From assembly GCA_977016875.1 (NCBI GenBank), contig CDRNST010000025.1, forward strand, positions 1,364,001-1,428,000: a stretch of 64,000 bases of DNA. The letters are read 5' to 3'. Shown here piece after piece: positions 49,778 through 60,246 of the stretch. How positions within the stretch are numbered: the stretch's first letter is position 1; every line of letters begins with the position of its first letter. The translations under genes were made by a program, and so were the position numbers. Below the pieces are notes generated by a model that searched no databases, was not told the origin of the DNA, and saw only the letters and a program-made list of their open reading frames with translations. Source of the stretch: Pavona decussata (lineage: Eukaryota).

Positions 49778-52700
49778 ATGAAAATGGGTCTGGCAGAGTC
49801 AGCATTGTTCTACTTTATAGCGTGGTTGTTCTTTGTATACAGTCTGCGAGAGAATAACAAAGTTGCAGGGCAGTTAGATGCTTATCTAGATTTTAACCTC
49901 GAAGAAGACGTTGTACCTACCACTGAATCACCAAGTTGCGGGGAACACGTGAGAAGATCAATCAAAGAGCGCAGTATGAACGATTCCTCGCATAAATCGA
50001 ATGTTACGACGGAAACAAACCGAACGATCGACTCGACTGTTACACCGAGTACCACCGAAGAGGCGTCTTCTGGAGAAGTTTGGGATGATTGCTTAGTGTT
50101 TCCCACTCAATGCCCTGATGAAATCAAAATCTCGTGGCTTCAATCAGCACCTTTTGTTTACGATGCCAGAAGCAGCGGCTTGGCTAAAAACAAGTCTGAA
50201 GAAAATATACTGCTTATGAAAGGCATATTTCATGAAATTATCACTCGTGCGATAGGCAGTTGTTGTAAGAGAATGTCGCGCGTTATTCCGAAAATCCGTT
50301 ATCTGAAACCGGCATCGAATCTTAGGGCTCTCCAGCGCGATCTTCTCTATGGCGCGGCAGATATGATAATACCAGTACACAGCGATGAAGTTAAATACGG
50401 AGGAAGCTTGCCGTACATCAAGATCTTAGATTCACCTGGAGTGGTGCTTATTCGAAGACACTTTCAATCCCCCACCACGGAATGGAAATTGCTATTTAAA
50501 TCTATCTTGGGGACTTGGCCTGTGGTGTTATTGGCTTTTTTGATGTCCTCTGTAGCTGGTGTATTCATATGGGCATTGGTAAGTAACGGTTATTTACTGT
50601 CAAAAGGTTAAACAAACGATACTAAGGGGCTGTTTACATGGAGCGAGGAAGATCCTACTAAAAGGAAGATCGTAGAAGGTGGATCAAATTTTCGTTTGGT
50701 TTACATGCAGAAATTAAATTGGTTACCAAGTAGAGAAGGAAAAGAGGACAAATTGTCGGCTTGAACGCTCGGCTGCCGCCATATTTGTTCTTTTTTCTCT
50801 CTAGTGCTAGGATCTTCCGAGCGAACTGGTAGTTTGCATGGTGCTGGGATCTAGTAATAGGATCTTCCTTTCTCTCAGCTAGGAAGATCCTATCTCTAGG
50901 AAGGTCCCACGTACAACTTTTGCCATGTAAACTGAATACAGACAACATATGGCGCTAGGTTGATCCGCCTTGTAGGATCTTCCTAGTGCTAGGATCTTCC
51001 TCCTTCCATGTAAACAGCCCCTAAATAAGACCTGGTAAGAATCGAAGCAGCGAGAGATCATCGCAGATTGCAGGCAATGAAAACATATCGAGAAATAATT
51101 GATAGGATTTGAAATTCCCCATGTGTTCTTTCGTTGTCGCTCGAACGATATAATAGAAATATTTAGAATCACGTTTACGGCAAACGACGAACAGCACAAA
51201 TGACCACGTGACAATGTTAATGCAACATTTGTTCCTCGTTGTTTTCAGTCACCTCATTATTCTTATCTATGTACTCATTTTTTCAGGAAAACATTAACAA
51301 GAACCTCACTTATATTTTCAAATGTTATAGGCTTCTCCTTTTTCTCGAGTGTGTTCCCAAGTTTAATTCGCTTTGAATGCGACTTAACATGACTCTGACA
51401 TCCAAATTAACCACCTGAAACAACGTCTTCGATCACATTTTAGAGTGGTGCATAGTGATAGCGACTAATTGCAAAATGGAAAGTCGCGGAGAGGTTTCAA
51501 GGTTTCTTGAAATAATTTATTAATTTGTCAAAATTTAAATTCTTGCCCTTTCTGTTATTTTATATATTTTATTACTGTTCTTTTTGACTGGCTGACTGAA
51601 CCACTCTTACGAGAGATTTTGTTTAGCTCTTTAGCTCCTTGATGTATCGGCTAAGAATCGTTTGTTAACAATGGCCAATGTTGACATAAAAATAGCTTAT
51701 TGTCAATAAACAATACTTTGATACCCATAGTATCAAAATTTTGTTACAAAATATCATCGATTTCATGATGGTGTTTGACAACGAGCTAAATGAAGTTTTC
51801 ATTCTTTTACACTAATTAGCGAGGAAACAATGATTAGTCCATGGACTCAAAAATACCACTTTATCGAATTTAAAAGATTCAGAGCTAAGCTTATGACTTC
51901 CTTGATGAGTCTTAGTGAGATAAACATTTGCCTAAAGCGTTTGTGAACAAGAAAAACATGACTCCGTATTTAAACAAATGAAATTCTTAATTGTATTGCG
52001 TTGAAACAAAAGACCACGTGTGTTCCTAGAGCAAAACATCAATTATTTGTTTATTTCAGGCGTGATATAATTACGAAGCACAGTTCAACCACTTGTAGTC
52101 TCTTGATAAAAGTCAAACCCTGGTATTCTTTGTAGGATTCATCACACAATTCAAAGCAGTTTCCTCCTACATTTCATCAAGGGGCCTTTGAAGGATTTTG
52201 GTGGGCTTTCGTTACCATAACAACCGTGGGGTAAGTCAAATCATCTACATTATGATAACTGCCTTTTCGTGTTTTAGTCATCTTCGATATAAGCGAAGTG
52301 GAAATGGGGGAATTACATATTGTGCTCGCAAACAAAAAGCACGCACACTCAAACGAATTCCCCGAGTGGATTTTTGCAGACTTACGATTTTCGACAAATA
52401 TTTGTTTGGTGTAGTTGTAGCTGAAAGCCAGCAATCGCGAAATGAGGCTTTGATGACCGCAGAAAAAAAATTTGAGGATACAATCGGTTCGAAAATTTCA
52501 AACTCAGCTTAAGTGTTTGCCTTCCAGGCTAGTTACAATTTATTGATTCAGCTAAATTTAAGTTAAGGTAGTTAAATTTTAGCGGGAAAATCTTTCCTCT
52601 GATGTGTATACAATTTTTACTAGAGCCCGAGAACTTTGCTAGAACTTTGCTATTTTATTCTTGTTTCCCACGCTGTGTTTTTTGCGCACGTCTCCCCACC

Positions 52701-60007: not shown

Positions 60008-60246
60008 ATATTTTTTTTTCCGTCCAAAACTTTTTCCTTTGAGGCCCGCAAATATATGGGATGATGACATCACACGATGTCTAAAAATGTAAACAAAATT
60101 GCCTCACCCCTCCCGGTCCTGCGTGAGTTTTTATTATCCTTAAACTGTACTTCATGGCTCTCTAGTGTGTTGCTTTTGTTTTGCTTGCAGGAGCACAAAC
60201 TATTGCAGTGATTTGCAGCAACGACCAGGAACAAACAGAAGTTTAG
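49778..60246 (+). CDS. GluR0-like ligand-gated K+-channel candidate (iGluR-type split S1/S2 domain plus K+ filter); exons 49778-50578, 52136-52230, 53507-53663, 54399-54462, 57060-57337, 59061-59265, 60191-60246; about 551 aa
   Basis: All six introns are GT-AG and phase-compatible (0,2,0,1,0,1). Signal peptide; S1 (QSAPFVY..GIFHEII..ADMIIP..SPGVVLI); M1 (WPVVLLAFLMSSVAGVFIWAL); pore FWWAFVTITTVG/YGDKAP; M3 (LWIIIGVTVCSVMTATLSSALT); S2 (GKRIGVLRDSAA..YDALKNGDGIDGIM..FGVA); extra TM in exon 6; terminal QTEV. The last exon is the least certain. Confidence 0.88.
50626..51021. mobile_element. Tourist/Harbinger-type MITE in channel intron 1
   Basis: taa|ggggctgtttacatgga..aggaagatcct ... aggatcttcct..ccatgtaaacagcccc|taa, TAA TSD. 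Confidence 0.85.
54606..54730. repeat. Degenerate inverted pair of minimal hammerhead-like repeat
   Basis: acgtttcgagtgctagccc..gtcag on one side and tgacgaagagctagcgctcaaa on the other; both cores are damaged. Confidence 0.4.
55296..55743. mobile_element. MITE with subterminal GATCGCA repeats
   Basis: ggctgacttccatatgatcgcag ... ctgcgatcatatggaaaccaacc. Confidence 0.75.
57752..58820. repeat. Array of 259-bp tRNA(Thr-AGT-like)-derived units: about 1.4 minus-strand units then about 2.7 plus-strand units
   Basis: tRNA-like segments ctcctgtagctcagtggtagagcat-ccgaactagtaatcgg-aaggtcttaggttcgactcctgataggag at about 58176, 58435 and 58694 (+) and about 57856-57929 (-); period 259. Confidence 0.9.
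59286..59600. mobile_element. TTAA-targeting MITE (Kolobok-like AG termini) in channel intron 6
   Basis: ttaa|agtgcacctaaccccaaa ... tttggggttaggtgcact|ttaa; internal inverted repeat of about 45 bp. Confidence 0.8.
59712..60007 (+). mobile_element. Near full-length tRNA-derived SINE with (ATTG)n tail
   Basis: Head ggatggcacagtggtgagagcactcacctcccaccaatgtggccc, body, then about 9-10 ATTG units at about 59969-60007. Confidence 0.8.

Follow-up and report, generated by a model that had tools for sequence, protein, structure and literature searches.

A GluR0-like gene with a potassium-channel filter in the coral Pavona decussata and its cnidarian family

Textbooks present ionotropic glutamate receptors (iGluRs) as a binding protein inserted in an inverted potassium (K+) channel, and the witnesses to this picture are GluR0 and a single rotifer receptor, AvGluR1. 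Here we describe a gene of comparable design in 64,000 nucleotides of the coral Pavona decussata (GenBank assembly GCA_977016875.1, contig CDRNST010000025.1, positions 1,364,001 to 1,428,000 of the forward strand; hereafter the window). The gene occupies positions 49778-60246 on the + strand and encodes a signal peptide, the two halves of a putative binding clamshell (S1 and S2), the membrane helices M1, M3 and M4, and a pore loop (P) bearing the filter of K+ channels. From its sequence, the locus is an intact gene that selection maintains in a cnidarian of stony-coral type, and its product is probably a ligand-gated K+ channel.

GluR0 and the rotifer AvGluR1 are named as the members of the superfamily that carry a K+ signature (PMC12332018, PMC11479355), and both are reported to be K+-selective (PMC11479355, PMC12332018). 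M4 is not present in GluR0 (PMC11479355). AvGluR1, from Adineta vaga, is treated in reviews as an evolutionary intermediate with a K+ signature, one of them calling it the first eukaryotic modular four-helix glutamate receptor (PMC11479355, PMC12332018). In a 2026 study of Nematostella, the tetrameric iGluRs of this animal are still regarded as excitatory, cation-selective channels (PMC13335744).

The coral protein shares with GluR0 and the bacterial proteins of its type the order S1-M1-P-M3-S2, the T-x-V-G-Y-G-D filter, the W-W pore helix and the lack of an amino-terminal domain, together with an E-R/T-K-x-N turn after M1, T-V-G-Y-G-D-K-x-P at the filter and T-A-T..S..L-T in M3. Unlike them, it has M4, a eukaryotic signal peptide, six spliceosomal-type introns and a cytoplasmic tail whose end is of the PDZ type, and it belongs to an animal family of about 70 genes; its binding lobes are too diverged for the SBP_bac_3 profile, and the ligand-binding Arg is Lys or variable. 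Like AvGluR1, it is a eukaryotic four-helix (M1, P, M3, M4) subunit of the iGluR type with a K+ signature, but AvGluR1 has by description the full modular eukaryotic architecture, whereas the coral protein has no amino-terminal domain. By structure, the AvGluR1 binding domain is also more distant from that of a modelled family member, P0193, than GluR0 is (Z-score 16.4 versus 20.4). The animal iGluRs (AMPA/kainate/delta/phi, NMDA and epsilon types) and the plant glutamate receptor-like proteins (GLRs) share with it the architecture of ligand-binding and transmembrane domains (LBD-TMD), including M4; compared with the animal receptors, it lacks the amino-terminal domain and the SYTANLAAF motif, and a K+ filter replaces the Q/R/N-site pore. 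Finally, its pore helix and filter are near letter-for-letter of the Shaker type found among KcsA, MthK, KvAP and Shaker, but unlike in those channels the pore sits inside a binding-protein clamshell, is inverted in the membrane and comes with no voltage sensor.

The joining of a GluR0-like binding domain, a K+ pore and M4, without an amino-terminal domain and in a large animal family, is a combination undescribed in the iGluR/GluR0 superfamily. A cnidarian group with a K+ filter is not mentioned in broad iGluR phylogenies (PMC6307864, PMC12226733), in a survey of insects and invertebrates (PMC2924276), in a prokaryote survey (PMC2950845), in a channel survey of 623 species (PMC12749960) or in the 2026 Nematostella receptor paper (PMC13335744). 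We found no paper naming the family or its accessions, with thin search coverage of subscription journals, so that an earlier mention is possible.

Gene structure and pore

A three-frame reading of the window gave seven phase-compatible exons, all on the + strand and separated by canonical GT..AG introns whose phases match throughout. Exon 1 (49778-50578) is an open frame of 267 codons that begins with a start codon, ends in phase 0 and is followed by the donor GTAAGT. It encodes a signal-like hydrophobic N-terminus, about 107 Ser/Thr/Asn-rich residues with N-x-S/T sites, S1 (approximately 50111-50473) and M1 (approximately 50516-50578), the exon closing on a hydrophobic helix, ...G-V-F-I-W-A-L, with GTAAGT directly after it. 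The low-complexity residues that precede S1 gave no Pfam match at E-values up to 10, and no amino-terminal (LIVBP-like) domain was found there, in agreement with the absence of a full domain proposed earlier. Exon 2 (52136-52230), whose acceptor is preceded by a pyrimidine-rich stretch, encodes the linker after M1 and the pore helix; it reads ...G-F-W-W-A-F-V-T-I-T-T-V and then GG of a Gly codon, with the donor GTAAGT. Exon 3 (53507-53663) supplies the A that completes this codon, followed by Y-G-D-K-A-P-R-S, M3 and the linker to S2 (...T-T-G-K-R). The filter T-T-V-G-Y-G-D (52220-53516) is consequently interrupted by the phase-2 intron 2 (52231-53506), inside its first Gly codon. A run of 22 bases, all C except for a single A, lies in this intron at 53432-53453; the acceptor of exon 3 follows some 55 bases downstream of it.

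S2 starts in exon 4 (54399-54462) with I-G-V-L-R-D-S-A-A-F-Q-D-A-V; this exon ends in phase 1 with the donor GTAAGG. The bulk of the lobe, including a conserved Cys and an acidic residue aligned with the Asp/Glu that binds the ligand amine, is encoded by exon 5 (57060-57337; donor GTAAGG). Exon 6 (59061-59247) contributes the linker before M4 (..N-V-F-D-S..), M4 itself as a hydrophobic segment 27 residues long and, behind it, a basic stop-transfer sequence, and ends with a phase-1 donor, G|GTGATT, at 59248. After a pyrimidine run and CAG, exon 7 (60191-60246) adds a short C-terminal tail that ends in E-Q-T-E-V before the stop codon TAG (60244-60246). The original prediction had described seven exons with the layout signal peptide-S1-M1-P-M3-S2-M4, the pore motif WWAFVTITTVGYGD with an intron inside its first Gly codon, M3 as VMTATLSSALT rather than SYTANLAA, and this S2 start. 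Direct reading agrees on every one of these points: the exon 3/4 junction reads GKR|IGVLRDSAA, M3 reads V-M-T-A-T-L-S-S-A-L-T in exon 3 with no SYTANLAAF in the window's M3, and the layout is present both in the exons and in the family proteins described below.

Read without splicing, the frame of exon 6 reaches a stop codon at 59285. A six-exon model ending there was dropped on the grounds that paralogues conserve a short terminal exon whose acceptor phase matches. A local tblastn search with the 17-residue exon 7 peptide plus one Gly located, in the two closest paralogous genes, a short exon 0.8-1.6 kb downstream of the M4 exon that ends in Q-Q-T-E-V-stop and has the acceptor phase of the window gene. 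A last exon ending in Q-T-E-V-stop is found in three paralogous genes (contigs C25, C37 and C90; five loci when the near-identical C37/C90 copies are counted), and the M4-exon donors of the paralogues, G|GTAAAG and G|GTAATG, have a phase identical to that of exon 6. Because the paralogues share this exon with its phase and its Q-T-E-V end, exon 7 and the gene end at 60246 were taken as real, which also upholds the end coordinate of the original prediction. The tail itself is a class I PDZ-binding-type end, a pattern known from the tails of Kv1.4 and GluN2, and hints at scaffolding.

The window gene was searched exon by exon, while full-length searches and folds were carried out on database proteins. 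In the 602-Mb genome, the 31-residue pore-helix exon 2 found 74 matches, which stop where exon 2 itself stops, and exon 3 found 73. All 73 loci fetched carry ...T-[TS]-T-[VLIT] GG|GT...AG N Y-G-D, the first Gly codon being split by a phase-2 intron, and Y-G-D is kept in 72 of them. At the exception, L016 (G000:C143:45000-54500), the exon 3 match begins with K-T-P-K-S and the frame upstream reads Q-I-I; this locus may be a pseudogene or have a shifted acceptor. In the 16 paralogous loci checked (contigs C37, C90, C123 and C143), exons 2 and 3 invariably followed each other as in the window gene and had matching ends; all of exons 1-5 were found in 12, and exon 4 counterparts, 55-71% identical, stood in the same place in 14. 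Where further exons were found at these loci, their ends likewise coincide. Exon 5 has 18 homologous exons in the genome and aligns to S2 of the family proteins, and exon 6 is matched in paralogues with E-values of 2e-09 to 1e-04. Annotated coral and anemone proteins align colinearly to exons 1-5, the exon matches abutting without gap or overlap, and in 19 orthologous exon 1 open reading frames from other assemblies conservation runs to ...W-A-L and divergence begins right at the donor. Because the gene has introns, M4, 73 paralogues and animal neighbours, bacterial contamination was rejected.

Exon 1 was compared with a close relative's genomic contig, whose nucleotide identity is 91.5% with upstream and intron DNA included; this yielded a synonymous divergence (dS) of 0.181 and a nonsynonymous divergence (dN) of 0.033, hence a dN/dS of 0.18. 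The gene is under purifying selection. Some features of the locus nonetheless count against a functional copy, and would suit a silent or decaying paralogue within a large family. The exon 3 donor, GTTCGC, is weak; the exon 6 donor is ambiguous between 59248 and 59266, with a better consensus fit at 59248; and one family locus, L016, is without Y-G-D. Moreover, the nearest orthologous locus, on an ENA contig of another species (L027, 9965-12021; exon 1 81% identical), looks frame-disrupted, with frame changes near the end of exon 1 and in exon 2, a filter reading T-I-K-T-V and no exon 3 detectable at the locus. L027 may be a decaying copy or pseudogene, or may reflect an indel or assembly error in a long-read assembly. 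Against a silent window gene stand its seven open exons with conserved motifs, the conserved terminal Q-T-E-V and the low dN/dS measured amid closely similar flanking DNA, and we regard silence of this copy as very improbable.

Hidden Markov model (HMM) scans assign the pore to K+ channels. Exon 3 alone matched the Pfam family Ion_trans_2 with 30.2 bits (E 4.3e-07; cut-off 22.5), and Lig_chan with 23.3 bits (E 6.4e-05), under its cut-off of 30.8; the match of exon 2 (31 residues) to Ion_trans_2 was weak, at 16.4 bits (E 0.0085). In nine family proteins scanned, Ion_trans_2 scored 47-61 bits, and seven of the nine also reached the Lig_chan cut-off (30.8-40.8 bits). Of the domain families proposed for the gene, Ion_trans_2 was therefore recovered in the window itself and Lig_chan above cut-off in its relatives only, while SBP_bac_3 was recovered in neither. 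Against solved structures, exon 3 matched K+ channels first (TASK2 at 6e-04, MthK), then NMDA NR1 at a similarly weak level, and a profile of ten family proteins searched against PDB sequences returned K+ channels in all of the top 60 places (Lmo2059 at 1.8e-16, KvAP, Shaker, KcsA). The stretch F-W-W-A-F-V-T-x-T-T-V-G-Y-G-D, down to its W-W cuff and the Asp behind GYG, belongs to the Shaker/KcsA type; Ion_trans_2 recognises the pore helix and T-x-G-Y-G-D, and the pore loop carries T-T-V-G-Y-G-D, not the Q/R/N site of a non-selective cation pore. The pore is homologous in sequence to those of K+ channels.

From this filter and pore helix, K+ selectivity of the family is likely. A GYG signature alone is, however, no proof of it. 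HCN channels have the GYG motif yet are weakly selective. The coral channel could in the same way be ligand-gated but only weakly selective between K+ and Na+, and therefore depolarising, like canonical iGluRs or HCN/CNG channels; some GYG channels behave so, and selectivity is not settled by a sequence. We think this improbable: the resemblance to Shaker and KcsA extends over the whole pore helix and filter with the W-W cuff and the Asp, all but one of the 73 paralogues keep Y-G-D, the top matches of the family profile are K+-selective channel families exclusively, and GluR0 and AvGluR1, which have such a filter, are the receptors reported above as K+-selective.

Binding domain

The family protein closest to the window exons, P0193 of Porites harrisoni (36, 59, 68, 55 and 37% identical to exons 1 to 5, respectively), was folded with AlphaFold2 from a family alignment of 33 rows. 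The model has a mean predicted local distance difference test score (pLDDT) of 81, with 255 residues above 90. VIA-align was run exhaustively against 48,161 chains, gaps of less than 1 Z counting as ties, and the best matches were the core of Synechocystis GluR0 (1iiw; Z 20.4, root-mean-square deviation 3.2 Å over 216 of 221 residues) and that of Nostoc GluR0 (2pyy; Z 19.4). Bacterial amino-acid-binding proteins (Z 17-18.5), AvGluR1 (16.4) and the plant receptor GLR3.4 (16.3) came next, followed by a ctenophore iGluR (16.1), GluD2 (15.7) and GluN1/2A (15.6). As modelled, GluR0 leads this ranking narrowly, and the GluR0-like clamshell of the original prediction finds its counterpart in the binding domain of P0193, which lies nearest to the solved GluR0 cores.

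Residues 45-397 of P0193 superpose on the GluR0, AvGluR1, GLR3.4, GluD2, GluN and GluK cores with Z 15-20. With Foldseek, about 440-495 columns of the model align to the LBD-TMD chains of GluA1-3, GluK2, GluD1 and GluN1/2A at E ~1e-12; the global TM-score (template modelling score) against these chains is low, around 0.3, owing to a difference in how the two modules are oriented. A helix at residues 421-462 prolongs the model, and its alignment with AMPA receptor and GLR3.4 chains extends through M4, the segment found in the window as the hydrophobic stretch of exon 6. Exons 1, 4 and 5 of the window align colinearly to S1 and S2 of P0193. On the strength of the P0193 model, the class II binding-protein fold of the family is beyond doubt.

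Several results weigh against carrying this fold and its function over to the window protein. The folded protein is a paralogue, about 35% identical to the window protein in S1 and S2. Neither SBP_bac_3 nor Lig_chan-Glu_bd had a Pfam match in the window exons or in the nine family proteins; exon 1 had no Pfam match at all, and both exon 1 and the profile of its orthologues returned only noise against PDB sequences. Folded alone, the window S1 reached a pLDDT of 68 and a best Z of 5.6, below noise level, with mostly binding-protein folds among its matches. The class II periplasmic-binding fold that had been proposed is accordingly borne out for the family member P0193, and the fold of the window S1 alone, at these scores, leaves that part of the proposal where it was. 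At the S1 position of the Arg that serves iGluRs as carboxylate ligand, the window has Lys; most of its orthologues have Lys or Arg, and the other subfamilies vary. An amino-acid ligand is not assured, given this Lys and the variation across the family. In S2, the acidic residue aligned to the amine-binding Asp/Glu is Glu in the window; it is Asp or Glu in those cnidarian rows that align over S2, and three of the six bacterial rows shown keep it. The ligand, to judge from these residues, may be an amino acid or an amine.

A clamshell that has ceased to bind small ligands and now has a structural or adhesive role, or binds proteins, above a pore that leaks or is gated by something else such as partners, mechanical pull or intracellular factors, would agree with the lack of conservation of the canonical Arg and the missing Pfam ligand domains. 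CUB+Ig, EGF and FN3 ectodomains in some family members likewise suggest binding to macromolecules. Such gating is nevertheless unlikely in our estimation. The P0193 clamshell is predicted with high confidence and lies nearest to GluR0 cores that bind ligands; the S2 acidic residue persists in the aligned rows just described, as does Lys or Arg at the Arg position in most orthologues of the window gene; and variable lobes around a constant pore are the pattern of ligand-diversified receptor families.

Family and origin

An all-against-all HMMER search with exon 1 recovered full-length relatives of 470-570 residues. Those with a species name belong to Scleractinia (Montipora, Acropora, Porites, Pocillopora, Stylophora, Oculina, Desmophyllum), Actiniaria (Nematostella, Exaiptasia, Actinostola), Hydrozoa (Hydra vulgaris) and Scyphozoa (Sanderia, Rhopilema), all Cnidaria and mostly stony corals, as expected from the cnidarian-like host deduced earlier from the letters of the window. 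In databases they bear the label 'uncharacterized protein' or 'Potassium channel domain-containing protein', and some are misnamed 'Kv subfamily B member 1-like' or 'member 2'. In the Atlas (features and shape), several cnidarian clusters of 54-181 members are followed by bacterial clusters of the GluR0 type. The filter intron has the same position and phase in Nematostella LOC5511755 and Hydra LOC100206068 and, being common to these genes, predates the split between Anthozoa and Medusozoa. The original prediction is thereby extended in three respects: about 73 paralogues, an uncharacterised family found across Cnidaria, and the PDZ-type end of the tail.

Within Pavona, the distinct genes number somewhat fewer than 73, because some loci form near-identical pairs (C37/C90, C132). 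The two closest paralogues are doubled in mirror order, at G000:C37:92500-108000 (L011/L012) and G000:C90:3830000-3846000 (L025/L026), which represents either uncollapsed haplotigs or a recent segmental duplication. Exact motifs coding for YTANLAAF, the mark of canonical iGluRs, occur 24 times in the genome, against 0 for a control pattern, and lie apart from the loci of the K+-filter family. Ten of the 24 fall within about 300 kb (G000:C25:731-294304) on the contig of the window, some 1.1 Mb upstream of it, an arrangement suggestive of canonical iGluR genes clustered in tandem. Among the paralogues of the window gene, the binding lobes are 30-60% identical and exons 2 and 3 are 62-84% identical. 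Variable lobes, a constant pore and tandem arrays fit a chemoreceptor-like family with many ligands, and the ligand probably differs between paralogues.

Other members carry additional modules before the clamshell: CUB+Ig in P0112 (Hydra LOC100206068) and P0149 (Nematostella LOC5501882), EGF in P0098 and FN3 in an Atlas cluster of 181 members labelled 'Fibronectin type-III domain-containing protein'. From their domain content these look like adhesion-type ectodomains fused to a K+-filter channel. A 494-residue member without introns, P0091 (L028, 10001-11485), lies on a 28-kb eukaryotic contig with open reading frames for reverse transcriptase and integrase a few kilobases away, and may be a retrocopy.

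Following the cnidarian proteins, a search with the family profile reached bacterial proteins of 350-390 residues that combine SBP_bac_3, Lig_chan and Ion_trans_2 and are without M4 (E 1e-27 to 1e-17). The search with the bacterial profile returned coral and jellyfish family members as its first non-bacterial matches (1e-24 to 1e-20), above plain K+ channels. Alignment of the two profiles with hhalign gave a probability of 99.9% and E 3.8e-36; its 275 columns begin where S1 begins, run on across M1, the pore and M3 and reach into S2. The whole cassette, binding domain as well as pore, is homologous. The relationship was placed in a quick maximum-likelihood tree of 57 rows and 362 columns in which several long branches were flagged. 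The tree comprises the cnidarian family and the bacterial GluR0-type rows; canonical iGluRs, plant GLRs and AvGluR1 are not among its rows, and sisterhood to iGluRs is outside its scope. The phylogeny proposed earlier was in this way realised for its bacterial part only. The cnidarian sequences form a single clade, with a scyphozoan sequence inside it (Shimodaira-Hasegawa-like approximate likelihood ratio test, SH-aLRT, 99), on a stem of 1.38 changes per site. A Synechocystis-type sequence, the main bacterial clade and this cnidarian clade meet in an unresolved polytomy, and the cnidarian clade is nested in no bacterial subgroup. Its long stem, outside the bacterial subgroups, excludes a recent transfer from one bacterial group.

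The tree is compatible both with ancient transfer and with vertical descent and cannot decide between them. In the first case, a bacterial gene of the GluR0 type would have entered the cnidarian stem and acquired M4, a signal peptide and introns later. The restriction of named members to cnidarians is in line with this, as are the next profile matches, which are bacterial GluR0-type proteins, many from marine Bacteroidota/Flavobacteriaceae. The binding domain of the P0193 model is also nearer to GluR0 than to any eukaryotic iGluR, and the M3 motif T-A-T-x-x-S-x-L-T is common to the bacterial proteins. However, M4 is a feature of eukaryotic iGluRs that GluR0 does not have (PMC11479355), and P0193 aligns through M4 with animal and plant receptors. 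The long stem in a polytomy, not within a bacterial subgroup, speaks likewise against a transfer. A further protein, P0203 (480 residues), from a JGI metatranscriptome, also has a similar layout while being GC-rich and eukaryotic. It is Ala/Arg-rich, with a signal-like start, S1-like and S2-like parts, a late hydrophobic helix and the pore F-W-W-A-A-V-T-F-S-T-V-G-Y-G-D, and forms a long branch in the tree; it is probably of protist origin and could be a K+-filter iGluR-like protein outside Cnidaria. On balance, ancient transfer seems to us somewhat less probable than its opposite.

The alternative, vertical descent from a K+-selective ancestor of the eukaryotic iGluRs, stays open beside it, and M4 speaks either for kinship with the eukaryotic receptors or for a later addition. 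Tentatively, and at slightly less than even chances, we suggest that the family keeps an ancestral state of the iGluR lineage, with the K+ pore and M4 already added, as a living intermediate between GluR0 and the animal iGluRs, and at the same time constitutes a large, hitherto unrecognised class of fast ligand-gated inhibitory K+ channels, acting as chemoreceptors or transmitter receptors, with PDZ-binding tails in some members and adhesion-type ectodomains in others.

Gating and significance

By analogy with GluR0 and the iGluRs, the window gene most likely encodes a subunit of a tetrameric K+ channel that is gated by an extracellular ligand and hyperpolarises the cell. We infer the tetramer, the selectivity, the ligand gating and the PDZ binding alike. 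The subunit would resemble that of an iGluR without the amino-terminal domain. Its signal peptide would place the two-lobed clamshell of S1 and S2 outside the cell, with the inverted K+-channel pore (M1, pore helix, T-T-V-G-Y-G-D and M3) inserted between the lobes and M4 and a short cytoplasmic tail following. The clamshell would shut on a small extracellular ligand, and the linkers S1-M1 and M3-S2 would in turn draw M3 open, in the manner of GluR0 and the iGluRs. K+ would then leave through a canonical four-site filter, producing at normal gradients an outward current that hyperpolarises or shunts the cell, while the Q-T-E-V tail could tether the channel to a PDZ scaffold.

The design of GluR0, supplemented by M4, is represented here by a family found across Cnidaria, with about 70 genes in one coral and a filter intron of old age. 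Should its members conduct K+ on ligand binding, they would form a second kind of fast inhibitory receptor in animals beside the Cys-loop chloride channels, and K+-filter receptors would outnumber canonical glutamate receptors by about 3:1 in this coral. The family offers material for the order of events in iGluR evolution, such as whether M4 was gained before K+ selectivity was lost, for the study of chemical sensing in corals, for example of settlement cues or of symbiont or microbial metabolites, and for compact natural ligand-gated K+ channels as silencing tools.

Two minor features of the window complete the description. Intron 4 (55288-55777) and intron 5 (57728-58744) contain, in the stretches given, short repeated elements in several copies and both orientations, visible as small recurring open reading frames (M-P-V-S-L-S-[KR]-I-..., M-T-Q-A-Y-S-E-K-R-N-P-S... 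and I-A-D-D-R-R-...); these are probably interspersed repeats, either like short interspersed nuclear elements (SINE-like) or of another kind. Far upstream of the gene, 138 N fill positions 8045-8182 and mark either a gap in the assembly or masked sequence.

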